Positions 1 through 64,000 of a stretch of 64,000 nt of DNA are shown piece by piece. Location: sequence record OR258281.1; one strand, 5' to 3'. Made by a program: the position numbers and the translations under genes. The first letter of the stretch is position 1; each line of letters opens with the position of its first letter. The notes below the pieces were generated by a model that saw nothing but the letters and a program-made list of their open reading frames with translations, searched no databases and was not told where the DNA came from.

Positions 1-1
1 C

Positions 2-3000
2 ATATTTTGCTTTCAATGAATACAATACTGATGATGTTGCAGAACTTGTATCAACAACTGGAGTACTGAACTTAAAACGTTGAAGTTTAAAGTGATTACC
101 AGTACCTAATACATCCTGAGAAGTACTTTGATACTTTTTATTCACAGCTTCTAACGCAAGTACAGAATCTAGTTCATCTGGAGTACATTGTACGTTATCA
201 AATACTAGAATCTCATTACTTTCCTGGAAAGGTCTCTGAGGTTCAACGAAATCACTAGGTAGAGAACCAGTGGTTACATACTTTTCCTGAATTTCGTCGT
301 ATTGTGCGTATTCATAATCCCAAATATCTTTCTCTACTTTGATCCATGAGCCATTTTCGAAAACATAACCGTTAGGACCAAGATCGTTGGAGATACCATT
401 AATTTCATCTTCATCAGAAGTTTTCTGTTCAATCTGAGAACGAATTTTAGTTCTGTAAGGTTTAACTTCTTCAAAGTACTCAACAATCTGATTAATTAAA
501 TCATCTTGTTGTAGGTAATTTTTCTGTAATGGTTGTTCTAAACCAACCACGAAGATATAAGAGGTTTTATAAACCCAATCTACCACATTTTGTTCAACGT
601 GTACATACTTAACCATATCAAACACCATTCTACTCTGAACAGTATCGAAGGTACTTTTTAGTAAAGTAATTGCCTGACGAACATTTTTCTCAATTGCAGT
701 TTCTGCACCAGTACTATCATACTGATTATATCCACTGAAGAGTTTTTCATTCATTTTGATTGTACTATTCTGACGACCAACAGCCTGCCATAGTAGTTTA
801 TTACGTGATACTGTTTTAACATATAGTGTCCAGATACCATCTGAACCAGTAACACGAATACAATCACCTTCCTGATAGTTTTTCTGGTCTGCAATGTCAG
901 TACTGGTTTCAACTGTAAATTCAGTACTATCATTATAACCATTACTATACCAATCAGTTAGTGACCAGTACTGAGTCATATCTAAATCAGTACCTAGACT
1001 AGAAACATAATCTGCCTGTTTGATAATACTGTGTTTACCAACACCAAGATCAGAAATTGTAATCGGAACAACATTACCATCTGAGCTTGCAGTACGCATT
1101 AACTGTATATAACCTTCATCAGTAATATGTACGAAGTAAACATCAGTATTTGTTAACGGAGATGGCAGTTCACCAGTGGTACTTACCAGAACTGTATCGT
1201 TTTCAACAAATGCTTTATCAGAAACACTAAGAACGTATTGGTTATTATAACTAATAACTTTGAATAACTTCTGGTTAGGGTTAACTTTATTAGTTTTAAC
1301 ATTAAACACAGAGTCCATCAGGACAGTATCAGTAGTAATGTTGATAGTCTTATAAATGCGGTTCATTGCTGAAACGAATTCACGACGAGCTTCCATTACG
1401 TCCATGAACCAAGTTTTATTAGGTTCACAACCAAGTAAAGTACTTGGGTACTGAATTACATTCACTTTATCTTCATCTAATTGTTCTTCACAAGTTAGTG
1501 AGTTGAATAGTGAATTCCAGATATTCGGATTGAAGTTATAATCCATACCTTCTTTACATAACTGGAACTGTTCGTGCTTAACTACTTCAGTTTTATCTTC
1601 CTGATAGTTAATAGTCAGAACACTTTTATCATCAGTAACTAAAGTTTCCTTTGAATTGATGATGAATGAATTACTATCTACCGGAGCGAACCATGGAACA
1701 TTTAGTTCAGATGGATCTTGAAGTGCACGTGCAATTTCATTGATTGTTTTGTTTCTAGAACTAATTTTCGGTACGTATATTGCATTCTGAACCCAAAAAT
1801 AGTAGAATGTTTTATAAGATGAAGTACTTTCATCCCATTCTTCAAATTGTGACCAGTCATCCTGAACAGCAGTACCACTTGGAACCCATGAAGAAGGATC
1901 TTTGTTTAGCTTCTGCTGGATATTACAATATTTTTCCCATTCCAGCGGTGATTTTGGAGATTTAACCCACTCATATACTACAATCTCACCATCCGGTAGT
2001 AATTTACCCCAATTATTACGTTTATACTGTAATGTAGCTTCTACATCAACATTACCTTCCGAATCATATATAGCACGGGTATAATCCATAAAGAACGCAT
2101 TGGAAGTGTCCCACCATACTTCACCAACATGTTCAGAACCCCATGCAAATGACTGCTCTGCATACACATTGAAACGTGCAGGGTTAACCGGAGTAGTATA
2201 CGTAATTTCACGCATTAATGAACCAGGAATAACACCATTAATTGGATCATAAATGTTGAAATTGATTTCAGGAACGTTAGTAACTGAATCGTAAGTACTT
2301 GGGCGGTCAAACATATTACTGTCCGGTGCCTGATAGCTATATTTGTTCGAAACATAGGCATCTTTTTCAGCTTGAGTACTGAAGATTGACTTATAAACAT
2401 AAAGTACGGGTTTCTCACCACTAAAGATAATGTCAGATGTTAATTCCAGTGGAATAACAAATGAATTCATAGTATCAGTACTGGTATAATACTCACGCTC
2501 TGTACTTAACATATCCGGCATGAATTGAGTATTATCTACGAAGTAATAATAATCAACACCACTTACCATGTTATGGTCTGCACTTAAGTTTACAGTACAG
2601 AAAGTACTTGATTCATTAGAAGCACGTTCATTCACAGTAATAGAATCAATTTCAATACCAGTATTAATGATATTGAACACATTCCAGTTTCCGTTAACAT
2701 CACGCAGAATCCATGCTTTAGCTGGCTGTTTATTGTAAGTATAAACGTATTGTGTACGCTCTGCAATAACAGTACTGAAGTCCTTCGATACAATATCAAC
2801 TTCATTTAATGTAACTGGACCGATGTTAGGAAGATTGATATTATTACTAACACCACTTCTCATCGGGAAGCTGAATTTACCATTAGGGCGAGTAACCCAA
2901 CGTGAATCTTTACCATTTGCACCGAAGTACTGGATGGTACTCGTATCAGAATCAGAAGAAGCGTTCACATCGAATGTGAATAACTGTGGATTCTGCTTAA

Positions 3001-6000
3001 TTTCACTGTTAATTAACTGGAACTGAAGATGTTTCTTACCATTAATGTTTCCATAAGTACCAATTTTGAAAGCCCATTCTTCTAGTGCTTTATAGTTTTC
3101 AGTATTATAGCTCTTTGAAACACGTAATACTTTCTCAAATGACTGTTTAGTACCTTTTTCACGAATATAACCTTTATAGAAATCAACCTGTGAACTTTCT
3201 GAGGTGATCATTTCTTTAAGATAATCACGACTCTGGAAACCAATAAGGTGACGACCTAAATTAGCAAGAGTTGAATTATCAGTAGGGTTGTCATTGTCGT
3301 AATACTTGGTAAAATCATTAACTAACTTCTCAAAGTTAGGTAAGGTGCCACTTTCAAGAACCATAAAGCCAGGTGCTTCAAGACGACCATTCCATGAGCC
3401 AGTGATATATCCATAAAGCTGAAGCATTTCATGAATAGAACCATAAACTGGCTGATAAATGTAGTTGCCAAAGATGGTTTTATTATCAAAGATAATTGCA
3501 TGTTCGAATGAAACTAGGTTCAGACGAATTAATGCCATCTGTTTAGTACTATCATCATCAAGGCGAACACTGAAAACGTTACCAATACGAGAAGTATCGA
3601 TCTCAGAAGGACGAATACCTGTACCTGTGCTATCAAGTAGTGACCAAACACCACCAGTATATTGAGCAACAGAAAGAACTGTACCGAATTCTGAGCCAAA
3701 TTTAGCATTAGCTGTGCTTGGAGATAGAATTAAGTACTCACCGCTTGATTTAGTGCTGATAGCCCAATCAAGGTATGACTTAGCAATTTTACCCCAATCA
3801 TATACTTCACCGTTACTGTCAATGTCTTCGAAAATCCATCCTTCGTTAACAAGATACTGACCATAGCCCGTAATGAAGTTATAAACCTCCTGTGGGGTCT
3901 TCAGTAGTGTACCATAGTCGTAGGTACTATATGTACTCAAGAACTCGCTGTAATGCGTTACAGAGAGGTTTCCAGCACTTGCAGTACTACGTTTGCCGAT
4001 TTTGTTAGGATTCTGCACGTTGAACTTAGAATTAACAAGGTCAAAACCAGTTAATGAATAGCCGTTTCCGGTCCAAGTAACTTTCATTGAACTGAAAATA
4101 GCTTCTTTATAAACAGAACTTTTAACAAGTCCGATTTTTTGGTTCTGTTGCGAAACAACACCGAAAGAATCAGATTTGAATGTTAAATTATCAGCTTTAC
4201 TATAACCACCAAGACGATGACCGATATTAACGTTACTAGCACGTAGAATATCACCGTAGTTTTTAGTTACATTAATGTTTTGAGAGATTAGTTTATCGCT
4301 AATCCACATCTGGTAACCAAGAGTACGGATTGAATTCTCACTATGTACTAAAGTATTAGAACTAAAGTTAAGACGAGTATTACTTTCACCGTACTGGAAC
4401 TGAGAATCACCGTTTTTAACAGTTTTAAGGTTAGAACTTTTAGTATCATAGAAATATGATGCAAACTTAGCTGGTTTAGCACGTAATAGAGTTAGTGCTT
4501 TATCAAATGCATAAAGCGGGGTATTAGAATATGCGAATTCAATTTCACCCATATCACCAAACTTCCAAGGTTCTGCTAAATGGTTAAGAGCACCACTTAC
4601 CATACCTAAAGTACTTGGAGAAATTAACTCAACGGTCATAATTTCGTTACCGTTTGATGCATAATTACCAGTTTTCTTGATTACGAACGGAACAACACCG
4701 AAATGTTTATATTTGTCGTACTGGCCTTTACGTGCACCCTGTGAAATAGTACCAGTACTAACATCACCAGAAACACCGTTATAATCCCATAGTCCGTTAC
4801 TTACTAGATTGCCATTTTCATTAACGAATGATGCATCATATACGTTGATAACGTCTGTATCATTAACACCAATCTGTACCTGACGTACTTTATACTCTGT
4901 ATTGAACCAATCAGGACGTTGAGTGAAACCGAACATTTCCCATGGATGAGTATGTGGACGATATGTGCCATACATGTCATTAAAAATTGCACGCCATGAA
5001 CCTTTAGCCGGAATATCGGTAACATTACCATTAACAACGTAAGTAGTACCGGTAAAGTTCCATGTCATCCAGTTATTTTGGTCATAATTATGTGCAGTCG
5101 CATCAATTGAGTTTGATGCAATAAAGTTTGTATACCCACGTAGTGAAAGAGTAGTAAACTCTTCAGAACTGTATTCAGTACCAGTATAATAAGCACTTGG
5201 TTTAAGATCACTTTCATTTAGTACAGGAACATAATCGGCATCTTTAAAATCGGCATCGATACTTGTATAAATGCGATTTTCAAGTTCATAGATTACATCA
5301 TCCATTAAAGGAACGTTACTGTTATTAACAGCATATGCTTTACTTACAGCACCAGTATGATCTACGTTGTAACAACCTACAGAACTACCAACATGCATAT
5401 AAACAGCTTTCTGTGGTTTAAAAGTACCAAGAATTCCTAAGAACTGTGGAGTTGCAGGAATATAAGTAGTTAGTACTGAAGAGTTTGAACCCACTAAGTT
5501 AATAGCGAATGGGAAATCAGAACTCTTACCAATGTTTAGTTTAGACAGAATTTCATCAACCAGAATAGATGCAGTCTTATTAGTGAATGCATTAGGGTCT
5601 GCGTTGTATAGCTGAATCATAACATTGTTAAAGCGGTTTTTGAATCGGAAGTACTCATTCTGGCTATACATAATAGCATCAAATAGATTCAGATTTTCAT
5701 TTGCTGAAGTCAGCATTAGTGGAAGCAGTGAAGCTTCATTCTGAATGATCTGAGTACTTAGACTGTTGTCAACTAAACCTTTCTCAAGCCGTAATTCATA
5801 ATCATTGGTATCATTAATAGAACCACTGGTGATGTTCTTACGAATAATTTCCTGGAAATGAAGAGTATAAAGACCCGCATGAACGTAATCAATTTTACCA
5901 TTCATTGGGTTATTTTTCAGATTGTCAGGAATTTCGTAAGCACCTAATTCTTTGTTTGGTACTTCAGTTGCACTGTAAGTTCTGATGCTAATAATAGTAT

Positions 6001-7756
6001 CATTAGTGAAAGTACTACTATTAGTAATATTAATCTTATCAACTTTACCTTCAGCATTTAAAATAGTAGTAAAACCATTGTCAAATAACTGTTCACCGTC
6101 AACATATACTTCAATAATATCAGTACTAGGAATAACTTTCTGTGCAACTTCATATTCCGTAACATAGATCTCAGAACTAACAACATCATTAGAAACCTGA
6201 TTCCATGTAAATTTAGTTGCACCTGTTTTTTGAGTGAACTGGTAAGTACTGTCAGTCTCAATAACATATGCATACATTTCAGCTATTGGAGAGTTGAAAT
6301 TGTTTAGTTCAAACAGAGAAGCGAATACACGGTACATTGAAGTAGTCTGTGCAGTATAAACTTGACGAACATATTGCTTTGAATCTTCTTCAGAACGAAC
6401 CCAATCAGTTTTAAGACTACTAACAATGGTATCATCTTCACCTGAACTTAGTACATTATAGTAATAGAATCCAGGGATCTCGGTAGTAGTTCCTTGGTTA
6501 GAATAGGTGAAACGTTGAGTCTGTAGATAGTTTTCAAAAACATAGTAGTTCATATCACTAAGTTCGATATGTACACCGTAGTTTTTATCTTCGCCATAAT
6601 TATAGTTAATTTTTAGGCCGAAGAGATTTGAGCCGCTAAAATTAGAGCTTGGATATTTGGTAGTATCACTTAGTAGGTTACCTTTACGATCATATAACTT
6701 GAACAGTGGAGAAGTATTCACACCACTTTTAGCCTGTGCTTTTTTCCATTGAGTACCGGTCCAGTAAAAACTTACGTTTGCGTATGATGCACCTTTACGA
6801 ATTAGTACTGTATCACCAGTTTTAGGTTCACCAGTAGGGCGTGAGTCGGTTTGCTCATCTTCATCTAATGCTAGACCATAAACTTTAGTATTGTCTTCCA
6901 TTGTTTTGACATATACTTTATAGATACGGTTATTTTCTCCGGGGTTACCAATGCTGGTGAATAGAATACGGTCGCCAGTTTGAATGATATTATCATCAAC
7001 ACGAACGTTATCAGATACACGCTTCTGTACAATATCTTCTGGTTTAACAGTATCAGAAAAATAGTCAACCACACCACGGAAACGAGTACCATAGTTTACA
7101 AGTTCAATATCTTTATTGAATTCGATAATCTGTGTTGCTGCACGGGTAAAACGTGAACTCTGTGCTAGGGTATCAGTTAGTTTACTACCATCTGGTAGTT
7201 CCTGACCAATAGTGTACCAGTAGTTCTGTAGAGACCACGTATTACCGTTTAGTGCATTACGTTCCATAACGATATAATCAGGAGAAATACCGAATTCGTT
7301 CTGGTTATCCCAAAAATAAGAACTGAAGTTCTGCATTTTGTTTGGGTTAATTGGTGGCGTCCATGAATAGAACTTACCACTGTTTAGGCGGCTTTCATTA
7401 TCCGTTAGTGAACCGTTATTTTCAAGGTGACCAACTAGATCTGGATAAAATTGTAGTGAACGAATAGAACTGTCAGTATTACGGCTTACATAAGCTGGAG
7501 AGAACTGATATTGCTGACGTTGTTCATCCTTCTCAGTTAAGAAAATTTTACCGGCAGCAGCGGGTGAACTATTATCACCGATATAGCCATCATATAGTTC
7601 TTGTTCTTCTGGAGTAAACCAAGGCTGAATAGCTTCATCGAAAAACATCTGAATCTGTTCTAGGTTTTGCATCCATTCTGGTAATCTTTTAATAACTAAT
7701 TTCTGATTCACCGCTTCGCTGATTTTAGAAGGTTGAAACGCAAATTTGTTAGCCAT
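2..7756 (-). CDS. Very large virion/baseplate wedge protein (>2585 aa, 3' end beyond window; not in ORF track)
   Basis: ATG at 7756 with GAGG SD, begins MANKFAFQPSKISEAVNQKLVIKRLPEWMQ. The frame is still open at base 2 (...SSVLYSLKAKY), and the ORF track reports no internal stop. It follows gp6 and has its own GATAAATA late promoter, which is the position of a gp7-like wedge protein. Confidence 0.75.
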   Translation of the reverse strand, partial: MANKFAFQPSKISEAVNQKLVIKRLPEWMQNLEQIQMFFDEAIQPWFTPEEQELYDGYIGDNSSPAAAGKIFLTEKDEQRQQYQFSPAYVSRNTDSSIRSLQFYPDLVGHLENNGSLTDNESRLNSGKFYSWTPPINPNKMQNFSSYFWDNQNEFGISPDYIVMERNALNGNTWSLQNYWYTIGQELPDGSKLTDTLAQSSRFTRAATQIIEFNKDIELVNYGTRFRGVVDYFSDTVKPEDIVQKRVSDNVRVDDNIIQTGDRILFTSIGNPGENNRIYKVYVKTMEDNTKVYGLALDEDEQTDSRPTGEPKTGDTVLIRKGASYANVSFYWTGTQWKKAQAKSGVNTSPLFKLYDRKGNLLSDTTKYPSSNFSGSNLFGLKINYNYGEDKNYGVHIELSDMNYYVFENYLQTQRFTYSNQGTTTEIPGFYYYNVLSSGEDDTIVSSLKTDWVRSEEDSKQYVRQVYTAQTTSMYRVFASLFELNNFNSPIAEMYAYVIETDSTYQFTQKTGATKFTWNQVSNDVVSSEIYVTEYEVAQKVIPSTDIIEVYVDGEQLFDNGFTTILNAEGKVDKINITNSSTFTNDTIISIRTYSATEVPNKELGAYEIPDNLKNNPMNGKIDYVHAGLYTLHFQEIIRKNITSGSINDTNDYELRLEKGLVDNSLSTQIIQNEASLLPLMLTSANENLNLFDAIMYSQNEYFRFKNRFNNVMIQLYNADPNAFTNKTASILVDEILSKLNIGKSSDFPFAINLVGSNSSVLTTYIPATPQFLGILGTFKPQKAVYMHVGSSVGCYNVDHTGAVSKAYAVNNSNVPLMDDVIYELENRIYTSIDADFKDADYVPVLNESDLKPSAYYTGTEYSSEEFTTLSLRGYTNFIASNSIDATAHNYDQNNWMTWNFTGTTYVVNGNVTDIPAKGSWRAIFNDMYGTYRPHTHPWEMFGFTQRPDWFNTEYKVRQVQIGVNDTDVINVYDASFVNENGNLVSNGLWDYNGVSGDVSTGTISQGARKGQYDKYKHFGVVPFVIKKTGNYASNGNEIMTVELISPSTLGMVSGALNHLAEPWKFGDMGEIEFAYSNTPLYAFDKALTLLRAKPAKFASYFYDTKSSNLKTVKNGDSQFQYGESNTRLNFSSNTLVHSENSIRTLGYQMWISDKLISQNINVTKNYGDILRASNVNIGHRLGGYSKADNLTFKSDSFGVVSQQNQKIGLVKSSVYKEAIFSSMKVTWTGNGYSLTGFDLVNSKFNVQNPNKIGKRSTASAGNLSVTHYSEFLSTYSTYDYGTLLKTPQEVYNFITGYGQYLVNEGWIFEDIDSNGEVYDWGKIAKSYLDWAISTKSSGEYLILSPSTANAKFGSEFGTVLSVAQYTGGVWSLLDSTGTGIRPSEIDTSRIGNVFSVRLDDDSTKQMALIRLNLVSFEHAIIFDNKTIFGNYIYQPVYGSIHEMLQLYGYITGSWNGRLEAPGFMVLESGTLPNFEKLVNDFTKYYDNDNPTDNSTLANLGRHLIGFQSRDYLKEMITSESSQVDFYKGYIREKGTKQSFEKVLRVSKSYNTENYKALEEWAFKIGTYGNINGKKHLQFQLINSEIKQNPQLFTFDVNASSDSDTSTIQYFGANGKDSRWVTRPNGKFSFPMRSGVSNNINLPNIGPVTLNEVDIVSKDFSTVIAERTQYVYTYNKQPAKAWILRDVNGNWNVFNIINTGIEIDSITVNERASNESSTFCTVNLSADHNMVSGVDYYYFVDNTQFMPDMLSTEREYYTSTDTMNSFVIPLELTSDIIFSGEKPVLYVYKSIFSTQAEKDAYVSNKYSYQAPDSNMFDRPSTYDSVTNVPEINFNIYDPINGVIPGSLMREITYTTPVNPARFNVYAEQSFAWGSEHVGEVWWDTSNAFFMDYTRAIYDSEGNVDVEATLQYKRNNWGKLLPDGEIVVYEWVKSPKSPLEWEKYCNIQQKLNKDPSSWVPSGTAVQDDWSQFEEWDESTSSYKTFYYFWVQNAIYVPKISSRNKTINEIARALQDPSELNVPWFAPVDSNSFIINSKETLVTDDKSVLTINYQEDKTEVVKHEQFQLCKEGMDYNFNPNIWNSLFNSLTCEEQLDEDKVNVIQYPSTLLGCEPNKTWFMDVMEARREFVSAMNRIYKTINITTDTVLMDSVFNVKTNKVNPNQKLFKVISYNNQYVLSVSDKAFVENDTVLVSTTGELPSPLTNTDVYFVHITDEGYIQLMRTASSDGNVVPITISDLGVGKHSIIKQADYVSSLGTDLDMTQYWSLTDWYSNGYNDSTEFTVETSTDIADQKNYQEGDCIRVTGSDGIWTLYVKTVSRNKLLWQAVGRQNSTIKMNEKLFSGYNQYDSTGAETAIEKNVRQAITLLKSTFDTVQSRMVFDMVKYVHVEQNVVDWVYKTSYIFVVGLEQPLQKNYLQQDDLINQIVEYFEEVKPYRTKIRSQIEQKTSDEDEINGISNDLGPNGYVFENGSWIKVEKDIWDYEYAQYDEIQEKYVTTGSLPSDFVEPQRPFQESNEILVFDNVQCTPDELDSVLALEAVNKKYQSTSQDVLGTGNHFKLQRFKFSTPVVDTSSATSSVLYSLKAKY

Positions 7757-12279: not shown

Positions 12280-14922
12280 TTATGCACATGCTTCAACACG
12301 TCTAATTAGTGTTTCAGCACGACGAGTTGTTTGTTGATACCAAGCGGAATTACGCATTCCACTTGCAGCAGCACGATAATCACCTCTTGCCATAGCTGAC
12401 AAGGTTCCGGTAAATTTACGTACTGAACCTAACCCCATTTGATATACCATTTCAGTTAGTACTAACTGAATCATATATGGAGTCTTCATGTTATAAGATG
12501 CATATATTTTCTTAGCACCAGTTATAGCAATTTTTACATCTTGCATTAAGTATTGTACTGCTTCGTCCATGGTTAAACCATTTGAGAAATCTTCTCCGGG
12601 TTTAATAAAGTGACCAAATCCAACTGAATGACCAAAGGCATCAACATATGGATATGAACGACCATTAATAGCATTACCGAATCCTTCAAAACCTTTTAAA
12701 TCCGAAATAAGTAGAGAATCGTCATTACTTACTTTCCAATCTACTACAGTTTTATCTATACTCACATTATCGTTAATCTGGAAGTTAACTGCTGAACCTT
12801 TAACCGCTTTTGTAGTATTTGCAGTTAAACGAGTAGGAGTACGTCTTGAACCACGTTGAGCATATCCTGAACCAATTGTTTGTACTGAAAGAATATTAAC
12901 AAGGTCAGTACTGTTAATTGATGGATCATTGCTTGCAACAGGTTTAGCATCTTTATTACTACGCTCACCAGCCTGAAGCTGTTTATTAGCACAATCAGAA
13001 CCTTTACCAGTTACAGTACTGTAGAATAAACCCGGATCAATTGTTCCACCAAAACCAAATAACGCAGAATTGGATTGACGAATTTCAAAGTAGAATATTC
13101 CATTACCGGTAGCTACTTTCTGTCCCTTTGTAACCGAGTCACCATTATACGAAGTTAGTTTTGCATCATAGAAAACAGATTTAAATCCATTTTTATGCAT
13201 AATATAAAAACCACCTTCTATTGTTGCTACAGTTCCAGCTTCAGGTGCAACAATGTCACCTTTACACTGGATAATCCATCCGTTGCGGTTTGATTTAGTA
13301 CCATCACCGTTATCAACATTCTGACCCCAATATCCGTACTGGCGAATTGTTCCGGTACATGGCATTACCATACCCAATGATTCATATGTCTGATAATAAG
13401 TGATACCTGAACCTTCAGTATCATAGAACATATCCTGTTCAAGAGCCTGTGAGACCTCTGGAGTGGTGTTAACTACCTGTACTGACTCCTGAGCCTTTTG
13501 TACTGGTACAACTGGCTGTACGTCATTTGCAGGTTGTGCACTTTCAGCCGGAGCAGCATTACTGGAACCACCACCCTGAACTGGTGCAGCCATTGCATCA
13601 CTGTGGTTAGTAGGGCTGGTAAATGCGGCATGGTAGTGAATATGGTTAACTAATCCGACAGATCCTGCCTGAAAGTCCTGACCTTTATAAATGGCATTAG
13701 TACTAACATCTGATTTAATTGTTAAGTGCGTTCCTGCACCTGTTAACTGAATTGCTGATGCTTTAGCATTTGTCACATCGGTACTAAGAAGATTCAGAGT
13801 ACTACCAGCAGTGATATTTGAACTTGCTCCACTCTGGAAACGAAGATCAGCACTGGCATATAAACGCAAACTTGCACCAGTATTAATTACTACTTCAGAG
13901 CCAACTTTTGCATCAAGCTTTCCAGCTAGATCTAATTTACTGTCACCGCCAACTTTCAAATTAAGATTACCACCTAATTCTATATTGAAATCTTTTGCGA
14001 TATAGTAGTTCATATCAGCTTCAGTACGAATGTTAATACTATTATCAGCATGAATGTTAATATATCCTTCTGGCGTTATTTCTACACGTCCAGTACCATC
14101 ACGGTTAATAATAAACACGTTACCGTTACTTTCTGAAAGTAATATCTGTGCACCACTTCGGGTTCTTAAACATATACCTTCATCTTTACGTGAACCAACA
14201 CGCGTATCATCACTGGGATTGTTTAGTTTAGTGTCCTGATAACCTTCGTCCTGATCCCAATTTGTTGCCTTAAGTTCATCATCTAACCAGCCATCATCAA
14301 TTACGATACTGTTCTGACGTGGTGAACTCATACCATAAACTGTTGGAATAGTCTGGCGAGTACTACTACGGTTAACCGCACCATTATTGAGATCGTATAA
14401 AAGGTTCTGTTTCTTTAAACCGTCAATAACAGGTGAGTTTACATATTTTTCTTCTACAACGGTTTCTAAACTATTACGATCATAGTCGGTAACTGGAATA
14501 GCACTATCTACTCCAGATGAACTTACTACTTTTGTCGCCATGCCCGGAACCATTGCGTTCATTCGGTCATCAAATACACCACCAAACCAGTACGCATCAT
14601 GAATATTACCATTAGCAAAGAATACGCATACCTGTGACCCAACATTAGGAGGAACAGCCCAAAATCCATAAGATTTCGGGTATTCTTGAAAGGTACTTGC
14701 ATTCTCTTCACCATCAGTACGGCCTGCGAATATAGAAACATATCGACATGTTATCCAAGACTCTTTAGTTCCTTCATTACTTTGCGAACCACTGATCCAT
14801 ACTTTCAACTTACCGCTGTTATCAGGATCGCGGTTATCTTTAACCACGCCAATCTGTATACGATCTGGATCGAAACGGCCTGCCTGGTTATTTGAATATT
14901 TTAACTGTTTGCTTTCCTGCAT
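12280..14922 (-). CDS. gp5: Baseplate hub/spike protein (gp5-like) with OB-fold, beta-helix, degenerate M23-like domain and C-terminal lysozyme, 880 aa
   Basis: IGVVKDNRDPDNSGKLKVWI (Gp5 OB-fold), FWAVPPNVGSQVCVFF, repetitive beta-helix, HIHYH apex at aa 427-431, C-terminal T4-lysozyme domain. Confidence 0.88.
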   Translation of the reverse strand: MQESKQLKYSNNQAGRFDPDRIQIGVVKDNRDPDNSGKLKVWISGSQSNEGTKESWITCRYVSIFAGRTDGEENASTFQEYPKSYGFWAVPPNVGSQVCVFFANGNIHDAYWFGGVFDDRMNAMVPGMATKVVSSSGVDSAIPVTDYDRNSLETVVEEKYVNSPVIDGLKKQNLLYDLNNGAVNRSSTRQTIPTVYGMSSPRQNSIVIDDGWLDDELKATNWDQDEGYQDTKLNNPSDDTRVGSRKDEGICLRTRSGAQILLSESNGNVFIINRDGTGRVEITPEGYINIHADNSINIRTEADMNYYIAKDFNIELGGNLNLKVGGDSKLDLAGKLDAKVGSEVVINTGASLRLYASADLRFQSGASSNITAGSTLNLLSTDVTNAKASAIQLTGAGTHLTIKSDVSTNAIYKGQDFQAGSVGLVNHIHYHAAFTSPTNHSDAMAAPVQGGGSSNAAPAESAQPANDVQPVVPVQKAQESVQVVNTTPEVSQALEQDMFYDTEGSGITYYQTYESLGMVMPCTGTIRQYGYWGQNVDNGDGTKSNRNGWIIQCKGDIVAPEAGTVATIEGGFYIMHKNGFKSVFYDAKLTSYNGDSVTKGQKVATGNGIFYFEIRQSNSALFGFGGTIDPGLFYSTVTGKGSDCANKQLQAGERSNKDAKPVASNDPSINSTDLVNILSVQTIGSGYAQRGSRRTPTRLTANTTKAVKGSAVNFQINDNVSIDKTVVDWKVSNDDSLLISDLKGFEGFGNAINGRSYPYVDAFGHSVGFGHFIKPGEDFSNGLTMDEAVQYLMQDVKIAITGAKKIYASYNMKTPYMIQLVLTEMVYQMGLGSVRKFTGTLSAMARGDYRAAASGMRNSAWYQQTTRRAETLIRRVEACA

Positions 14923-14935
14923 TTAAAACTCCATG

Positions 14936-17068
14936 TTATGTATTTTGTGGTGATATTTTATTAAGACTACGAATAATCAAAGCACCATTAATATGTTGGG
15001 TAAATTTACCGCCACTAAAATCGCTTACAACGGTTAATACACGATAGAATGATTGTGCGAACACACTCTTATCAGATATATCCATGATTCCGGTCTTATC
15101 ACTGATTTTACTTGATGGTTTTAGATTAAGTAACAGGTAACTTTCACCAGTAATATAATTAGCGGTTCTACTCTCAGCTTTAATTTCAATATCACGTGCA
15201 ATTAATGCAGCATTTAGATAATTCATATAAACATCTTCTGACCATCCTAGCCAGTACGGGTCACCTACTACATCCATATTCAATTCAAGAAGAAATGAGC
15301 GGTTATAATAGTTAGATTTACATGTTCTTCGATATAATTCATATGGAGAACTGTTCTGTACGGTACTAGATGAACTGGTTTCTGAAATGTTAGTAGGTTC
15401 AGTTGGAATAGTGTTAACATAATTACCACTTAATCCAGATGTTGCAAGCTCCTGTAAATCAGTATCTGATAGATCTTCGATAAAAACGTCAGATCCGGGA
15501 ACAGGAGATAATGAACTTAATTCATCATCGCCTTCAGTGACAGGACGTGTAGCCAGTGCAGCAGTACTATCACGTAAAAACTGCTTTTCTGACTCAGTTA
15601 GTACTTTACCCTCTGTTTGTTTTTTCTTAACCTGTTCAGATACTTTATATAACTCACTTAAATCTGAGTTTGCATTGACTTCAAACGTTTGGTTATTGAA
15701 AATAATAGTCTGAGATGCATGAGTACCAGAACTGTTGTTCGCATCTACAACACTGTATGGGTTACGAGTAGTAGCTACGTAAAAATGTGAGTCAAACTTC
15801 ATCTGTAAGTCAAGTACTTCACTATTCAACCCGGTGAACTGAAAATCATATCGTTTAGCTGGTATCTTAAGTGAATTAACACGTGTACCTTCAGGATCAC
15901 GAGAAACATCACGAATAAACGAGTTCACATTGAACACATTAGGGTCCATATCCTTATATTCTTTAATATCATAAGTCCAGAATGGTACAATATAATAATT
16001 ATAACGATATGCTGAGGTATTTCTAATAGGGTCATAACATCCATATGCAGCACTTGGTACTATCTGTACGAATTGACGGTTATTAGGGTCAACCGTACCA
16101 TCTGGTAACGTACCTGCACAACAATCTATTACGTTATCAATAATATTACTGATATTCATGGTAGCTTCGAACCGGAATTGACGATTACCAAAAGAAAGTT
16201 TAGCATCTGCACCATTTTCCTGGTCCTGTTTAGCATCAAGTACCATACCCAAGTTCTTTAATGAATCAGACACATGAATATTAAAAAACTTACCATCATT
16301 GAATGCTGGGTTTTTTGTCAGATAACCATACTGCTCTTTACTCATCTCATTCAGTTTATTTTCAAGTTGCTGACAGAAGTCACCGAATGTTGAAGTATTA
16401 CATTGGAATGGTTCTTTTAATATCCATGCCGGGTTATCATACGTGTTTCTTAGACTTACCATGTTAATTTTATGGTTAAAAGTACCACCTTCAGATGAGG
16501 GATCACTTTCAATTGTGTTAATACGAACGTTCCAGTACTTTCTGGTATCTGGAATTTCGGTCATTACACCAGTATCACCCTTCTGACCAACGAATTTAAG
16601 TTCAAGAATTAAAGGAACATCAGCAAACTTCTTGTAATTAAGAACATTTGACATGATAATAAGATCATCCATAAAATTCATGCCATTCTGTTCAGTAATA
16701 TTCAAATCTATCTGTAGTACGGAGTTGTTTGTAGTCTTTCCTGGAGAGCCGGGGCCGATACCAGTTATTTTCACATCACCTATACTGTATTTTGCAGTCA
16801 CTCCACTTTGTGCGATAACATAACGCTGAACCCGTTCTTTTGAATTAACCTGAAACAGTTTAAAGTCGGACTGACTCATTGCATACAAGGCAAAGTTATA
16901 TGTGTATGTGCCGTAATCAAATAAAACATTCGGATTATCAACAATGCGTTGATTCAAATCTATGTCACTTAACGTGTCATCAAATTCATTATAGTTAGGG
17001 TTATTACTTTTAGCGTTTACGTCAGGTGTTTTAATATTTGCTGCACTTGAAGAATAAGCGTTAGCCAT
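14936..17068 (-). CDS. Putative baseplate hub protein (gp27-like position), 710 aa
   Basis: Long ORF between the gp53-like and gp5-like genes; NPNVLFDYGTYTYNF start and C-terminal VVGDPYWLG...YRVLTVVSDFSGGKFTQ resemble contractile-tail hub proteins (inference). Confidence 0.55.
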   Translation of the reverse strand: MANAYSSSAANIKTPDVNAKSNNPNYNEFDDTLSDIDLNQRIVDNPNVLFDYGTYTYNFALYAMSQSDFKLFQVNSKERVQRYVIAQSGVTAKYSIGDVKITGIGPGSPGKTTNNSVLQIDLNITEQNGMNFMDDLIIMSNVLNYKKFADVPLILELKFVGQKGDTGVMTEIPDTRKYWNVRINTIESDPSSEGGTFNHKINMVSLRNTYDNPAWILKEPFQCNTSTFGDFCQQLENKLNEMSKEQYGYLTKNPAFNDGKFFNIHVSDSLKNLGMVLDAKQDQENGADAKLSFGNRQFRFEATMNISNIIDNVIDCCAGTLPDGTVDPNNRQFVQIVPSAAYGCYDPIRNTSAYRYNYYIVPFWTYDIKEYKDMDPNVFNVNSFIRDVSRDPEGTRVNSLKIPAKRYDFQFTGLNSEVLDLQMKFDSHFYVATTRNPYSVVDANNSSGTHASQTIIFNNQTFEVNANSDLSELYKVSEQVKKKQTEGKVLTESEKQFLRDSTAALATRPVTEGDDELSSLSPVPGSDVFIEDLSDTDLQELATSGLSGNYVNTIPTEPTNISETSSSSTVQNSSPYELYRRTCKSNYYNRSFLLELNMDVVGDPYWLGWSEDVYMNYLNAALIARDIEIKAESRTANYITGESYLLLNLKPSSKISDKTGIMDISDKSVFAQSFYRVLTVVSDFSGGKFTQHINGALIIRSLNKISPQNT

Positions 17069-18255: not shown

Positions 18256-18292
18256 TATATTTTCTCCTTAGTACTAATAACTTTATTGTACT

Positions 18293-18308
18293 TTGCAAGT
18301 ATTTATTT
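18293..18308 (-). promoter_or_regulatory. Late promoter AATAAATA for the baseplate operon
   Basis: tatttatt at 18300-18307, about 45 nt upstream of the ATG at 18255. Confidence 0.6.
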
Positions 18309-18311
18309 GGC

Positions 18312-18340
18312 TGAAACGTTTTAGTAAAGTGTGCTATACT
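18312..18340 (+). promoter_or_regulatory. Early/middle promoter TGAAAC-N17-TATACT (gp55-47-46 operon)
   Basis: tgaaac gttttagtaaagtgtgc tatact; one of 10 copies with identical spacing. Confidence 0.85.
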
Positions 18341-18389
18341 ACTAATGTGAACAAGGATTCGTTCATTGAGTACTTACATGGAGTTTAAA

Positions 18390-19256
18390 ATGATTACCAA
18401 GAAACCCAAGAAAAAATATCTGAATAATGCGGATTTACTTCGCGAAATTCAGAAAAGTAAAATGTCCTATTGTTATGTGTTAGATGATTCGTACAGCATG
18501 TATGATTACATCGTGTTTGATGTTACTGAGGTAACACAAGAACTTCTTGAAGTTGCTGCGATTGATCGTATGAAGCGTTTGAATAACGAACTCATTGACA
18601 AAGTTCAGGAAGAACAGGGACTATCAAAGAAGAAAGCAAAAGAATATGCTGAAGACAATTCTTTAATTATTAAAGAAGTACCTTTTGATGAAATCGTAGT
18701 AAGAGTTATAACTAATGAACACGTACCATATATAGAAGACAGTGCCAAAAAAGTACGTACTAATTTTGAACCATTTAAACACTACATCGTAGATAATACT
18801 GGTGAGTTGATTGAAGTTGCACGTTCACATTGGAATGGCGACTTAGATAATGGTACTTTTAGTCTTACAACCGGACGTCTTACTAATGAACTCGGTAAAA
18901 TGTTTATCAAGCTTGCTGAACATTATGCACAACGTGCTAATTACCGAAATTATACATATATCGATGAAATGATGGGTGATGCACGTATACAATTAGTAAA
19001 AAATGCATTGCTATTTAATGAAAGTATTTTTTATGATAAAAAACGTGATAAACCAGTAATTCAGTTGAATCCATTTGCCTATTATACCTCCTTTGTTAAT
19101 AATGCATTCCGTTCAGTACTGAATACTGAAAAGCAAGTTCGTAATATACGTGATGACCTACTGGAAATGCACGGATTCGACCCTAGCTTTACACGACAGA
19201 TTGAAATGGAAATGAAAATGGTAGAAGGAAAGGCAAATCGTGGCTCTATTCAATAA
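18390..19256 (+). CDS. gp55: Late-transcription sigma factor (T4 gp55-like)
   Basis: KYLNNADLL, ELGKMFIKLAEHYAQRANYRNYTYIDEMMGDA, NPFAYYT; start refined to ATG 18390 behind GGAG; upstream of gp47/gp46 as in T4. Confidence 0.9.
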   Translation: MITKKPKKKYLNNADLLREIQKSKMSYCYVLDDSYSMYDYIVFDVTEVTQELLEVAAIDRMKRLNNELIDKVQEEQGLSKKKAKEYAEDNSLIIKEVPFDEIVVRVITNEHVPYIEDSAKKVRTNFEPFKHYIVDNTGELIEVARSHWNGDLDNGTFSLTTGRLTNELGKMFIKLAEHYAQRANYRNYTYIDEMMGDARIQLVKNALLFNESIFYDKKRDKPVIQLNPFAYYTSFVNNAFRSVLNTEKQVRNIRDDLLEMHGFDPSFTRQIEMEMKMVEGKANRGSIQ

Positions 19257-20280: not shown

Positions 20281-22422
20281 ATGCTTTTCTTCAAAAAAAT
20301 TAGTATGAAAAACTTTTTCTCATTCGGTAACGTTCCTCAAGTTCTAGAACTTGATAATAGTGCACTAACTCTAATTCTAGGCCAGAATAATGACGCTCTC
20401 AGTACTGATGGTGCTGAGGGTGCACGTAATGGTGTAGGCAAGAGTGCAATTATTCAGGGATTAGCTTACGGTCTGTACGGAAAAAGTATTGATAACAGTA
20501 TTAAAATACCAAACCTTGTTAACAAAATCAATGAAAAACACTGCGAAGTGAAAATTGAGTTTGAAAAGGATGGTATTTCATATCGTGTTGAACGTGGACG
20601 TTCACCAACATTCTTTAATTTCTACAAAAATGATAATATCGTTGAAGTAGATGAAAGTCGTGGTGAAATGAAAGACACACAGGAAGAACTAATTGAAGTA
20701 CTAGGAATATCTCAAACACTGTTTGAACATATAGTTGTGCTTAATACTAACGTACTGCCTTTCCTAGCTTTGAGTACTTCTAAACAGCGTGATATGATTG
20801 AGGAATTACTTGGTATTACTCAATTAACTGAAAAAGCAACTCTTCTCAAAGATATGTACAAGGAAACTAAACGCCTTGCCGATCAAGAGAAGTTTAGACT
20901 TGATACTGTATTCGAAAGTAACAAAAAGATTGAACAGAGTATTTCTGCACTGGAAGAACAAGCAGCAAACTTTGAACTTCATAAAGAAAAGAAGATTAAA
21001 GAAATTAACAACAGTCTAGAACAATTTAAAAACCTGAACTGGACTGAGTTGATGGAAAATGCTGTTAAATGTGATGCCATGCTAGTTCAAAATAAGAAAA
21101 TTGATGATCTTAAACGTAGCCTAACTGATTTAATGAATAAACGTACTAAGTACGATGAAAATATTAAATCACAGAAGAATGCAGTACTAAAGAATATTAA
21201 TGAACTTAAAAATATTGACATTAACGAAGAACTTGCAGCACATGAGAATGTAAAAGCATGGGAAGAATTGAATACCATTCATAAAGAGTTATCTATGAAT
21301 ACTCTTATGATAAATTCAAAGATTACTACTATAAATCAATACATTAAGAACAGTACTAACAAACTTGAAAAAGAGAATGCAGTACTAAACAGTCTTACTG
21401 ATATTGACAATGCTAAATGTCCTATGTGCGAACAGAGTTTAGAGCATACAGATTCACATGAAAGTATGTTATCAAACTGTAAGTCTAATATTGATGCAAT
21501 CAATGCAGAGATTCAGGGTTATAATGACGATATTGTAAAATTAAAGTCTGAATTACCTGAACTGTTTGACATGCCACCTAAACCAAGTACTCATTATCCT
21601 TCTGTGTCTGAAGCCAAGCTTCATGAACACAAATTGAGTACTTTAGAACAGGCATATAAAGAAGAAGGTACTAACCCATACGATGCTGATATTGTTGAGG
21701 TACAAAGTACTCTAGATACCATGGAGTATGTTGAAGTACCACAATATATTGATATTAGTTCAATCAGTATGTTACAGTTCCAGGAAACGGCATTAAAGAA
21801 AGATTTAGAACGTGAGAATGCGAGTACTAACCCGTATTTTCCACAAATTGAAGTACTAAAGAATAACTCGCTACAGATTCTTGACTATGATGAGTATAAC
21901 AGACTTGTCAGTACTTATGAGCATCAGGATTTTCTGACTAAACTACTTACAAACAAAGATTCATTTGTTCGTAAACGTATTATTGACCAGAATATTCAGT
22001 TCCTTAATAAGCGTCTGTCTTATTATATTGAGAAGAGTGGTTCTAACCATAACGTTGAATTCATGAACGACCTGAGCGTTGATATTTCGATGAATGGTAA
22101 ATCATATGACTACAGTCAGCTTTCCCGTGGTGAGCGAAATCGTATTATTATTTCTTTGAACCTTGCATTTCGTGATACTTACGAATCATTGTACCAGAAT
22201 ATCAATATTCTTTTTGTTGATGAGATTATCGATAACGGCCTTGATTCAAATGGTGTGTACAGTGCATGGAGTATTTTGCAGGATTTGAGTGCGACACGCA
22301 ACAAGAACATTTACGTTGTATCCCATCGTGAAGAACTTTTGAGTAAAGCAGCAAGCATCCTTAAGGTTCTAAAAGAAGATTCATTCAGTACTATTGAATT
22401 CTGTACTTCAGAAGATTTTTAA
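20281..22422 (+). CDS. gp46: Recombination ATPase subunit (gp46/Rad50/SbcC-like), 713 aa
   Basis: Walker A GARNGVGKS, coiled coil with CPMC zinc hook, signature LSRGE, Walker B LFVDE, VVSH. Confidence 0.95.
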   Translation: MLFFKKISMKNFFSFGNVPQVLELDNSALTLILGQNNDALSTDGAEGARNGVGKSAIIQGLAYGLYGKSIDNSIKIPNLVNKINEKHCEVKIEFEKDGISYRVERGRSPTFFNFYKNDNIVEVDESRGEMKDTQEELIEVLGISQTLFEHIVVLNTNVLPFLALSTSKQRDMIEELLGITQLTEKATLLKDMYKETKRLADQEKFRLDTVFESNKKIEQSISALEEQAANFELHKEKKIKEINNSLEQFKNLNWTELMENAVKCDAMLVQNKKIDDLKRSLTDLMNKRTKYDENIKSQKNAVLKNINELKNIDINEELAAHENVKAWEELNTIHKELSMNTLMINSKITTINQYIKNSTNKLEKENAVLNSLTDIDNAKCPMCEQSLEHTDSHESMLSNCKSNIDAINAEIQGYNDDIVKLKSELPELFDMPPKPSTHYPSVSEAKLHEHKLSTLEQAYKEEGTNPYDADIVEVQSTLDTMEYVEVPQYIDISSISMLQFQETALKKDLERENASTNPYFPQIEVLKNNSLQILDYDEYNRLVSTYEHQDFLTKLLTNKDSFVRKRIIDQNIQFLNKRLSYYIEKSGSNHNVEFMNDLSVDISMNGKSYDYSQLSRGERNRIIISLNLAFRDTYESLYQNINILFVDEIIDNGLDSNGVYSAWSILQDLSATRNKNIYVVSHREELLSKAASILKVLKEDSFSTIEFCTSEDF

Positions 22423-22921: not shown

Positions 22922-22965
22922 ATGTAGTACTCAATACTATAACATAATAGTATTTAGAAAATACA

Positions 22966-22994
22966 TGAAACATTCGTGAAATGTGTTCTATACT
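22966..22994 (+). promoter_or_regulatory. Early/middle promoter TGAAAC-N17-TATACT
   Basis: tgaaac attcgtgaaatgtgttc tatact; followed by about 640 nt with no credible ORF. Confidence 0.85.
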
Positions 22995-22996
22995 AC

Positions 22997-23590
22997 ATGT
23001 ATAAACCTGATTGGCGTACCCGTTTAGTCGTGGATTGATGATAAGAGTTTCATCCTTCTTGGTACGATGTATAAAACCTGATCCTATCGAAAACGTAGAT
23101 GGCAGATGAGTTGTCCAAACAGAACGAAGTGCAAATGAGACCCGTGTATATTACTCCAAGCGAACGCAGAGGACACGGCAATGCGGCACTATAAAGAGCA
23201 AAGATAATGCAAGTAATGCTCCATAGATAGACATATAAGGATCGCACCTTACCAACATGCATAAGGGATTCTATTACTAAAATAGATTTAGCGACATATT
23301 TTTATAATATAAATGTGTCCTGAATATTAGTACTTAGAGAGCTAATACGATTAATCATACAGTCTGTATTAGTAGAGTAGTGATGAACTACGACCGTTGT
23401 TAGAATGGCGATAGGAAGAAACAGGACAACCCGCTTCCGCTTACGATGTACAATATAGTTACGTCTAAAATTCGCTGTATGATATGTACGACGATACCAG
23501 CGTCAAATTTATATTTCACTTCCCTCTTGCGGGGGATAGAAATGTACTCATAGAACCGCGTCAAGTAGTAGTTGCTGTATAAGCTTTGTT
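22997..23590 (+). ncRNA. Candidate large structured non-coding RNA (or very long structured leader)
   Basis: Promoter-driven, no + strand ORF, 42% G+C at 23041-23220 against AT-rich neighbours, more than 10 stems with G-U pairs favouring the + strand. Confidence 0.5.
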
Positions 23591-23641
23591 ATTATTAAGT
23601 TTATAAAGTAATTAATATTAAATGAATTGAATGAGAAATGA

Positions 23642-24187
23642 ATGAACGTAGTGAATTCATTACGAATGAAAATTCTGACTTGCTTTAGCAAGGCATCTAA
23701 AGAGACATTAAGAATGTTAGAAAAGAACTATGAATATTTTATAGAATTCAAATATAATTTCCTTAATCTACTTCAAGAAATGCATAATTGGAATCAATGG
23801 TATTCCGTATTAGATACTACCAATTCATATGATAATATCAGATTTTGCTTTGATATTAAAGCATTTAACTCTAAGTACTATATCGCTATTTTTAATGAAA
23901 CATATAGTGGTTTGTTTGTTAGAATGATTAAAACTATAGCTTACACTAATGAAGATTATCGAATAAACTTTCATTTTAGTAACTATGACAAACTCAAACA
24001 TATAACTATATCTTTGAATCATGAATATGATATAATCATTGACATTACTGCTAAAACCTATACATTAAGAACTGTTAGGACTCAAGTACAACAGGCATTA
24101 TATGAAAATAGTGATTTCATTTTTAATATGTCATTCATCTATCCATTACAAGAAGATTTAAAGTACATTAAAGAAAACTTTTTATGA
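23642..24187 (+). CDS. Hypothetical protein, 181 aa (paralog family with C-terminal FIFNMS..YP motif)
   Basis: ORF track; very AT-rich; C-terminus NSDFIFNMSFIYPLQEDLKYI resembles that of the next ORF. Confidence 0.75.
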   Translation: MNVVNSLRMKILTCFSKASKETLRMLEKNYEYFIEFKYNFLNLLQEMHNWNQWYSVLDTTNSYDNIRFCFDIKAFNSKYYIAIFNETYSGLFVRMIKTIAYTNEDYRINFHFSNYDKLKHITISLNHEYDIIIDITAKTYTLRTVRTQVQQALYENSDFIFNMSFIYPLQEDLKYIKENFL

Positions 24188-31516: not shown

Positions 31517-31567
31517 TCTGTACACAATGTGCTGATATACAATCCAGTACTTATAAGGAGATAACGA

Positions 31568-47778: not shown

Positions 47779-47802
47779 TTCTATATTGTATTTGTATTGA
47801 GT

Positions 47803-47810
47803 ACTAAATA
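47803..47810 (+). promoter_or_regulatory. Late promoter ACTAAATA for the terminase operon
   Basis: Followed by leader hairpin 47814-47837 and AGGAG SD of 47855. Confidence 0.65.
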
Positions 47811-47854: not shown

Positions 47855-50171
<2,317 letters not shown>

Positions 50172-63242: not shown

Positions 63243-63254
63243 AAGGAAGAAAAG

Positions 63255-64000
63255 ATGATCTCACAGGAAGTGAAAAACTATGATCCAAAATTCCAGCAGT
63301 TTATGCTGAGTGTTATGTTAAACGAACCTGAAATTTTTGTTCGTTGTCAGGGTATTATTAAACCTGAATATTTTGATAAAGCTTATAAGCCTGTTGTGAA
63401 CTTCGTACTTGAATATGCTGACAAGTACCGTACCCTTCCATCTCTGAAAGAAATTGAAGTTAATACTACAGCAGCATTTGAAGCAGAAGTAATTAAGAAG
63501 GAACACCGTCAAGGACACCTTGATAGTATTGAAAGTTTCTGTCGTCATAAAGCACTAGAGAATGCAATCCAGGAAGGAATGAAATGCGTTCAGGAACGTA
63601 AGTACGGTATGTTAGAAGTACTGGTCAAAGAAGCAATGCAGATTTCATTGCAGAATGACTTAGGTACTAACTATTTTGAAGATCCTGAAGGTCGTATTCG
63701 TGCACTATTTGACGAACAGGGTACTATCAGTACTGGCTGGATTGATGTTGATAAACGTCTATTCGGTGGTTTCGGTCCAGGTGAATTAGAAATCTTCCTT
63801 GCACCTTCTGGTTGTGGTAAGTCAATGCTCATGCAGAACCTTGCTGTTAACTTCAGTGCACGAATGATGAACGGCGTATACATTTCTTTGGAACTATCAG
63901 AGAACCTTGTAAACAGCCGTATTGACAGTATGATGCTTGATCGCAGCAAGAAGAATATTCAATCCAATATTGAAGACGTTGCTGCTGAGATTAAAGTACT
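63255..64000 (+). CDS. gp41: Replicative helicase (T4 gp41/DnaB-like), 5' part; not in ORF track
   Basis: MISQEVKNYD...ISTGWIDVDKRLFGGFGPGELEIFLAPSGCGKS (Walker A)...YISLELSE; runs off the window. Confidence 0.93.
   Translation, partial: MISQEVKNYDPKFQQFMLSVMLNEPEIFVRCQGIIKPEYFDKAYKPVVNFVLEYADKYRTLPSLKEIEVNTTAAFEAEVIKKEHRQGHLDSIESFCRHKALENAIQEGMKCVQERKYGMLEVLVKEAMQISLQNDLGTNYFEDPEGRIRALFDEQGTISTGWIDVDKRLFGGFGPGELEIFLAPSGCGKSMLMQNLAVNFSARMMNGVYISLELSENLVNSRIDSMMLDRSKKNIQSNIEDVAAEIKV

Follow-up and report, generated by a model that had tools for sequence, protein, structure and literature searches.

Genome-wide enrichment of the palindrome AGTACT in Xanthomonas phage XaC1 and its Rak2-like relatives: a possible recognition tag on phage DNA

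Introduction

What maintains a single restriction-type palindrome in large excess throughout the DNA of a virus? The question is raised by the hexamer AGTACT in a stretch of 64,000 nt (the window, by which the whole stretch is meant), corresponding with 100% identity to bases 186001-250000 of Xanthomonas phage XaC1 (OR258281.1), a jumbo myovirus of X. vesicatoria with a genome of 348,967 bp. AGTACT is the recognition site of ScaI and Eco255I, and its core GTAC that of RsaI, HpyAXII and PabI (in part PMC2588503, PMC10273834). The window encodes T4-type baseplate, head, replication and recombination functions, including gp46/47, a UvsX-like protein, primase and helicases, and the genome encodes a topoisomerase II. 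A sequence-only reading of this DNA had described the hexamer as highly iterated and as shaping codon choice, and had proposed that a phage-encoded modification, repair, recombination or DNA-organising system targets (A)GTAC(T).

This article examines the size of the AGTACT excess, the level at which it acts, its distribution among phages and the explanations that may account for it. Whole-genome counts were made on eight annotated stretches of OR258281.1, joined.

AGTACT in the window and in the XaC1 genome

The window (positions 1-64000) holds 195 copies of AGTACT, against 24.7 +/- 4.5 and a maximum of 36 in dinucleotide-preserving shuffles, and the site positions, the hexamer ranking, the frame analysis and the codon shuffle described below agree with this excess. 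The word ranks first among the 4096 hexamers, at 9.0-fold its base-composition expectation. Markov models of orders 0 to 4 predict 21.6, 25.5, 51.5, 113 and 180 copies, a rise which indicates that the excess accumulates stepwise from GTAC (2.7-fold) via AGTAC and GTACT (4.5- to 5-fold). In the whole genome 1356 copies were counted where 118 are expected (11.5-fold, one per 257 bp), every 10-kb bin reaches at least 5.7-fold, and the highest values, 20- to 25-fold, occur in the first 30 kb, a region of small early genes. GTAC itself is present in 3941 copies genome-wide (3.5-fold).

Sites occur throughout the window at about 3 per kb, in non-coding DNA as well as in genes on either strand and in each of the three frames. 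The part of the virion structural gene XaC1_312 that lies in the window (1-7756, minus strand) contains 27 of them, as counted on its annotation, and shows that the enrichment also holds in minus-strand genes, in which frames 0, 2 and 1 hold 40, 15 and 8 sites, respectively. On the plus strand, XaC1_322 (20281-22422), annotated as the gene of a gp46-like, Rad50-type endonuclease subunit, contains 13. The 3436 nt of non-coding DNA in the window carry seven sites where about 1.2 are expected: two at 18270 and 18369 (span 18270-18374), between the divergent genes XaC1_319 and gp55-like late sigma; two at 22926 and 23329 (span 22926-23334), in a 790-bp gap that follows the endonuclease VII gene; and one each between the prohead protease gene and XaC1_333 (31546-31551), between XaC1_337 and XaC1_338 (35246-35251) and upstream of the gene of the single-stranded DNA-binding protein (47800-47805). 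The hand counts from which the enrichment had been proposed, namely 15 sites in positions 1-3000, 13 in the gp46-like gene and non-coding sites at 18270, 22926, 23329, 31546 and 47800, were reproduced on recounting, the sites at 18369 and 35246 being additional to them; the enrichment in the window is confirmed as real and every coordinate and count of that reading as correct.

Codons, reading frames and protein sequence

The contribution of codon usage was examined by permuting synonymous codons within each gene, which holds constant the protein, all its dipeptides and the codon usage of that gene. The window genes contain 187 AGTACT against 56.2 +/- 6.8 after shuffling (z = 19), and the excess is found in each frame: 110 against 36 for AGT-ACT, 19 against 4.4 for xAG-TAC-Txx, and 58 against 15.5 for xxA-GTA-CTx, the last being the second frame in which the word had been reported. 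Over all XaC1 genes the figures are 1158 against 361 (3.2-fold, z of about 42). No other hexamer deviates as strongly, and the next palindromes, CACGTG and GTGCAC, reach 1.6-fold and 1.5-fold. A ratio near 1 after such dipeptide-preserving shuffling, with other palindromes behaving alike, would have spoken against the earlier reading; what was obtained is 3- to 4-fold per frame.

Serine codons illustrate the effect. AGT, the serine codon that the motif imposes, is the commonest one of the window genes (36% of serine codons), and in the gp46-like gene all nine Ser-Thr pairs are spelled AGT-ACT at the positions given in the earlier reading, while TCA and TCT account for 25 of its 61 serine codons. 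In the genome-wide shuffle the other Ser-Thr spellings TCAACT and TCTACT are down to 0.4-fold, and ACTAGT to 0.36-fold. Ser-Thr is also the most over-represented dipeptide of the XaC1 proteome (914 pairs, 530 expected; Thr-Ser 1.07-fold), and 566 of the 914 pairs (62%) are spelled AGT-ACT. Other dipeptides able to spell GTAC are likewise in excess, Val-Leu at 1.52-fold and Gly-Thr at 1.63-fold, along with Val-Gln and Val-Pro. The pressure on AGTACT thus extends into protein sequence. XaC1 also encodes a tRNA-Ser with anticodon ACT (ACU), which has an unusual A34 and is cognate to AGT (record 305983-306070, outside the window).

A signal on double-stranded DNA

On the sense strand a word and its reverse complement show similar enrichment (CAGTAC 2.7-fold and GTACTG 2.2-fold; AAGTAC 2.65-fold and GTACTT 2.3-fold) although 89% of XaC1 genes lie on one strand, which places the signal on duplex DNA. 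An oriented word of the Chi or KOPS type was looked for and no orientation bias was seen, AGTACT being self-complementary and its flanking words strand-symmetric. The bases flanking GTAC combine roughly multiplicatively, with window counts of 195 for AGTACT, 69 for GGTACT, 54 for AGTACC, and 0 for both GGTACC and CGTACG. Outside the hexamer, XaC1, Xanthomonas phage XbC2 and six other relatives favour C(-1) and G(+1) and disfavour G(-1) and C(+1) once codon position is corrected for, and the 8-mer CAGTACTG occurs in 119 copies in XaC1 where 3.6 are expected. The AGTACT pressure is therefore shown to act on DNA, with dyad symmetry, and not on translation.

Purged palindromes

The excess stands in a genome from which many other palindromes have been removed. 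GCGC is absent from the XaC1 genome (327 expected), and 23 hexamer palindromes are at zero, including CTGCAG, GGTACC, CAGCTG, GGATCC, GTCGAC, CTCGAG and GAGCTC; the expected numbers are about 100 for CTGCAG in codon shuffles, about 81-84 for GGTACC, 78 for CAGCTG and 29 for CGTACG. TGGCCA and CGATCG are present once each. Among relatives, GCGC is absent from XbC2, at about half the expected number in phage XacN1, and normal in Agrobacterium phage Atu_ph07 and in PA5oct.

This purge of restriction-type palindromes argues that XaC1 DNA is not globally modified and that selection on short words is efficient in it; being nearly total, it suggests the same for these phages as a group. The complete absence of GGTACC and CGTACG disfavours a protective modification of every GTAC. 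AGTACT belongs to the class of 4-6 bp palindromes that is subject to phage restriction-site avoidance, and XaC1 itself avoids others to an extreme degree, but the sign is opposite, both AGTACT and its GTAC core being enriched.

Distribution among phages

The XaC1 capsid protein shares 86% identity with its counterpart in coliphage 121Q and 60% with the one in Atu_ph07. At the capsid-gene loci of IMG/VR contigs, AGTACT reaches 3.2- to 6.5-fold where capsid identity is at least 87% and about 1-fold where it is about 65%. Nine Rak2-like jumbo contigs, taken to include 121Q, GAP32, CBB and BF, gave 7.6- to 13-fold in 20-kb loci around a conserved methyltransferase gene, and XbC2 gave 12.3-fold. 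The outgroups lack the enrichment: 3 copies were found against 13.7 expected in Atu_ph07, 1 against 8.4 in PA5oct and 0 against 5.9 in XacN1. AGTACT enrichment is thus a mark of the Rak2-like clade, in all members tested, and is absent from the nearest outgroups. The enriched phages infect Xanthomonas, Escherichia, Klebsiella, Salmonella, Cronobacter, Serratia, Erwinia, Pectobacterium and Yersinia, a breadth of hosts that is most simply explained if the determinant is carried by the phage.

IMG/VR was also scanned for other lineages with three AGTACT within about 80 bp. Among the matches listed, the strong ones outside Rak2-like fragments are mainly tandem coding repeats, such as collagen-like Gly-Ser-Thr; loci L153, L168, L166 and part of L122 are explained in this way and were discarded. 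L122 (IMGVR_UViG_3300017648_000055, 60 kb, 42% G+C) also has about 20 dispersed AGTACT in 9 kb outside its collagen-like repeat; its top hexamers are GTAC-rich (CTGTAC, CAGTAC, TGTACT) and no match to an XaC1 protein was found in the 14 kb compared. It may represent a second GTAC-enriched lineage. No literature linking AGTACT with jumbo phages was found, the papers on XaC1, RaK2, CBB and jumbo-phage comparison being silent on the motif.

Spread, conservation and turnover

Site density is inverse to constraint. In XaC1 it is 6.0 per kb in non-coding DNA (12.6 per kb in that of the early region) against 3.1-5.5 per kb in coding DNA, and it is lowest in the capsid, portal and terminase genes. About 85% of sites lie within genes, evenly over early, middle and late ones. 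Counts per gene are Poisson-like (dispersion 0.91), which rules out a tandem-repeat artefact, and genes of homing endonucleases (HNH) and other accessory genes, examined as a test of recent acquisition, carry sites too. Spacing is exponential-like, with a coefficient of variation of 0.96, and neither regular spacing nor helical phasing was found in XaC1.

Sites are conserved beyond other words, put overall at 2-3 times better than the average hexamer: at 87% identity the fractions retained are 0.82 for AGTACT and 0.53 for hexamers as a whole, and at 74% identity they are about 0.5 and 0.25. Each lineage has many private sites despite this raised conservation. Differences at AGTACT between related genomes fall mostly at the outer positions, and C/T at position 5 and G/A at position 2 are also among the commonest. 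The pattern is that of an ongoing, genome-wide pressure on the number or density of AGTACT, not on the positions of sites.

A candidate methyltransferase

A methyltransferase correlating with the enrichment had been suggested as something to look for, and the conserved gene mentioned above is a candidate. XaC1_104 encodes an N6-adenine methyltransferase of family PF05869 ('Dam') with 50-56% identity across the clade; its gene lies directly upstream of a cytidyltransferase gene in five relatives, and four small genes intervene in XaC1. In a 41-kb stretch of Atu_ph07 the methyltransferase encoded near the cytidyltransferase gene belongs to another family. The PF05869 gene is conserved and syntenic across the clade, but the correlation is confounded with shared ancestry, since among PF05869 carriers only Rak2-like contigs are enriched and the association of enzyme and motif is inseparable from phylogeny. 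In 70 other phages, whose PF05869 homologues are more distant, AGTACT is not enriched and GTAC is mostly depleted. A search with the single methyltransferase sequence matched nothing, and the correlation comes from an alignment-based search.

XaC1 DNA is reported to be cut by EcoRI and to resist NdeI and EcoRV (PMC11273794), and RaK2 DNA was reported to be methylated (PMC3622015). Some modification therefore exists, and neither report bears on AGTACT. The XaC1 genome has 162 CATATG (NdeI) and 27 GATATC (EcoRV) sites despite the reported resistance, which hints at adenine modification in a short context including an ATAT core and has no direct bearing on AGTACT either. The XaC1 annotation lists neither a cytosine methyltransferase nor a Vsr homologue. 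Two other candidates were set aside: the HNH endonuclease XaC1_228, considered as a conserved nuclease, is sporadic and about 30% identical in relatives, and M.EcoGIX is a plasmid-borne methyltransferase specific for single strands.

Promoters, a non-coding repeat and avoided words

About 18 near-identical early promoters of the sigma-70 type occur at 2400-26000 of the XaC1 record (ATTAAAAGTACCTTGCAA-N11-GGGTACTTTATAATGTACTTA), with a -35 TTGCAA, a 17-bp spacer, a -10 TATAAT and two or three GTAC boxes each. The boxes immediately precede the -35 and -10 elements or lie at about -5, and amount to only a few dozen of the AGTACT sites. Our reading is that the same pressure acted at tolerant promoter positions, and that the boxes were then copied with the promoter family.

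The 790-bp gap that follows the endonuclease VII gene (window 22930-23720, record 208930-209720) is a copy of a non-coding repeat with five copies of about 0.65-0.7 kb and 69-75% identity, all in annotation gaps and with no conserved open reading frame. The other copies lie at 14798-15375, 48672-49354, 117376-118005 (directly following the HNH gene XaC1_228) and 303230-303889 of the record. The repeat has no credible Rfam match and might encode a large non-coding RNA or constitute a mobile non-coding element.

Words resembling a late promoter are strongly avoided in XaC1 genes in both orientations (TAAATA 0.20-fold and TATTTA 0.18-fold in codon shuffles; TATAAATA 2 copies against 15 expected, TATTTATA 0 against 20), and AAAAAA and TTTTTT are halved. 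Avoidance of the promoter-like words is in keeping with a late promoter of the T4 kind, to be read by the gp55-like sigma factor (window 18390-19256).

Discussion

The proposal of a system acting on (A)GTAC(T) holds in that the pressure is real, acts on DNA, overrides codon and dipeptide choice, and has a determinant that travels with the lineage; an activity on GTAC in general is unlikely. Tentatively, and somewhat short of an even chance, we regard AGTACT as a selected recognition tag of the Rak2-like lineage that is read by the phage itself. A symmetric DNA-binding or DNA-modifying factor encoded by the phage would read (C)AGTACT(G) on double-stranded DNA, probably as a symmetric dimer, and the pressure would keep sites dense without fixing where they lie. 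They would accumulate where they are tolerated, above all in non-coding DNA, then through synonymous changes and, to a measurable extent, through amino-acid changes to Ser-Thr, Val-Leu and Gly-Thr. The most plausible use would be as a 'self' mark on phage DNA, or in its loading, organising or protection; telling phage from host DNA during shut-off and degradation, a protective coating and condensation are candidate roles. The tag would then do the job of hydroxymethyl-cytosine in T4, in a lineage that appears to lack base substitution of the T4 style and avoids restriction sites instead.

Several results weigh against this proposal. Random spacing, uniformity across genes and turnover of sites are equally expected from a neutral drive, and the excess conservation of sites could stem from a drive restoring them. 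One site per 257 bp is denser than the known tag systems mostly require. The analysis found no binding protein, nuclease or methyltransferase of AGTACT specificity; the association of the PF05869 methyltransferase with the motif is confounded with phylogeny, the enzyme has no relative with a solved structure in the Protein Data Bank (PDB), and the genes next to it lack recognisable domains, apart from two Pfam families of unknown function. The published early promoters of phage CBB have neither GTAC boxes nor the architecture seen in XaC1, so that the XaC1 boxes give no functional clue.

The main rival is a neutral drive, of the kind proposed for the cyanobacterial word HIP1, in which a lineage-encoded enzyme pair, such as a site-specific methyltransferase with mismatch- or nick-directed repair, or else another form of biased gene conversion, keeps turning near-cognate sequences into AGTACT without benefit to the phage. 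We consider it unlikely but a serious contender: the sites are pervasive, Poisson-like in number and inverse to constraint, from non-coding DNA at the top to capsid, portal and terminase genes at the bottom; they turn over; the altered amino-acid sequences look like a cost rather than a design; an orphan PF05869 methyltransferase is kept across the clade; and in cyanobacteria a methyltransferase target lies within the comparable word HIP1 (PMC6105098). Repair of T:G mismatches of the Vsr type should, however, deplete the single-mismatch neighbours, and this was not seen (AGTATT 1.00 and AATACT 0.87 relative to the codon shuffle, other neighbours about 1.3); the position 5 C/T and position 2 G/A differences persist among the commonest between genomes, neither a cytosine methyltransferase nor a Vsr homologue is annotated in XaC1, and a dyad-symmetric flank preference beyond the hexamer is less expected of a target of the restriction-modification type. 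The enrichment could also be licensed passively, the phage methylating AGTACT so that the word escapes restriction avoidance and drifts upward. A methyltransferase conserved in the clade is in line with this, as are the reported resistance of XaC1 DNA to NdeI and EcoRV, though EcoRI cuts (PMC11273794), and the purge of all remaining GC-containing palindromes. Licensing of this kind predicts a ratio of about 1, and not 11.5-fold over composition, 3.2-fold over the codon shuffle or a remodelling of dipeptides, and other palindromes that are not avoided stand at only 1.0- to 1.6-fold; by itself it does not account for so large an excess, and we hold it to be highly improbable.

Less probable than a neutral drive, but well ahead of passive licensing, is a role of AGTACT as an enzymatic site of phage DNA metabolism for cleavage, nicking or priming, many sites speeding the replication of a 349-kb genome. 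Examples would be a 4-base-staggered cut A|GTAC|T by a T4-type topoisomerase II, a starting point for primase, or a break that the phage makes in its own DNA to initiate recombination-dependent replication. By sequence logic a palindrome suits a symmetric enzyme leaving a GTAC overhang, the window has topoisomerase-independent replication and recombination genes, the genome has a topoisomerase II, and density matters rather than position. Yet PA5oct, Atu_ph07 and the outgroups of about 65% capsid identity share the T4-type replication module without the enrichment, the XaC1 genes for HNH nucleases are of the homing type, occur sporadically and are not conserved in the clade, and we know of no T4-type enzyme with such hexamer specificity. 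A regulatory element (part of a promoter, operator or terminator) or an RNA-level AGUACU signal is given a marginally smaller chance than licensing. The 18 early promoters with GTAC boxes in the first 26 kb, the site-richness of the early region (20- to 25-fold) and the fact that a palindrome places the same word in mRNA from either transcribed strand would suit it, but some 85% of sites are intragenic and even over early, middle and late genes, the boxes are missing from CBB early promoters, the strand symmetry and the dyad symmetry of the flanks suggest a signal on duplex DNA, and Rfam gives no family match in the window; as a promoter or operator element the word was rejected, its sites being neither fixed upstream of genes nor kept in CBB promoters. 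Least credible, to the point of being negligible, is a translational bias from codons, codon pairs or tRNA. AGT, ACT and GTA are preferred codons and the phage-encoded tRNA-Ser(ACU) is cognate to AGT, but shuffling of synonymous codons leaves an excess in each of the three frames, the reversed pair ACT-AGT is rare (30 against 111 expected) and the enrichment is highest in non-coding DNA. Codon usage and codon-pair bias are refuted by the shuffles, the frame analysis and the non-coding density, and the tRNA is better read as adapted to the motif.

Comparison with known systems

Among known phenomena AGTACT is closest to cyanobacterial HIP1 (GCGATCGC), for which, as here, a methyltransferase is suspected (PMC6105098, PMC6604393). 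Both are short palindromes in enormous genome-wide excess, present in all frames and in non-coding DNA, lineage-specific, subject to turnover and biasing codon and amino-acid usage. AGTACT shows the following traits of a HIP-type word: a palindrome, the top hexamer at about 10-fold or more, found in all frames and non-coding DNA, clade-wide and with outgroups lacking it. HIP1 differs in being 8 bp long, GC-rich and found in a cellular phylum, whereas AGTACT is a 6-bp, AT-rich word of a virus clade and stands alongside purged palindromes.

Chi (read by RecBCD), the DNA uptake sequences DUS/USS and KOPS (read by FtsK) are likewise dense genome-wide words by which proteins read DNA as their own, and for them too density and distribution count more than exact position. 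They are asymmetric and orientation-biased and have known readers, whereas a palindrome gives no direction; Chi itself is only mildly enriched in XaC1, with 21 copies. The hydroxymethyl-cytosine of T4 offers a parallel drawn by inference only, that of a T4-related phage telling its own DNA from that of the host for shut-off and nuclease protection; T4 uses a chemical base substitution, and what is proposed here is a sequence word. The E. coli SlmA-binding site GTGAGTACTCAC is a palindrome read by a dimeric protein and has an AGTACT core. Its flanks G(-1) and C(+1) are, however, those disfavoured in XaC1, the trait is equally strong in Xanthomonas phages, and the full site, with 0 copies in XaC1, was rejected as an explanation.

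A bolder form of the tag proposal, which we think rather unlikely and place a little behind the neutral drive, is that AGTACT replaces a modified base as the self mark, and that an unrecognised phage reader, possibly together with the PF05869 methyltransferase, spares, organises or preferentially uses phage DNA while that of the host is shut down or destroyed. If true, it would mean a sequence-encoded identity system in a virus, one that has remodelled the proteome and recruited the tRNA-Ser(ACU).

Significance

Phages are textbook avoiders of palindromes, and here a whole clade of about 350-kb genomes does the reverse for one ScaI-type site. We tentatively infer that selection rather than drive is responsible and that the reader is encoded by the phage. 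The Ser-Thr excess implies that protein evolution is constrained across more than 500 genes. Unless modification protects the sites, ScaI or RsaI should fragment the DNA of these phages, and AGTACT density provides a sharp signature for Rak2-like contigs in metagenomes. If AGTACT is a tag that is read, jumbo phages would possess a hitherto unknown way of recognising their own DNA or of handling DNA; if it is the product of a drive, it would provide a second HIP1-like system, and a much more tractable one, as several members of the clade grow on laboratory E. coli.

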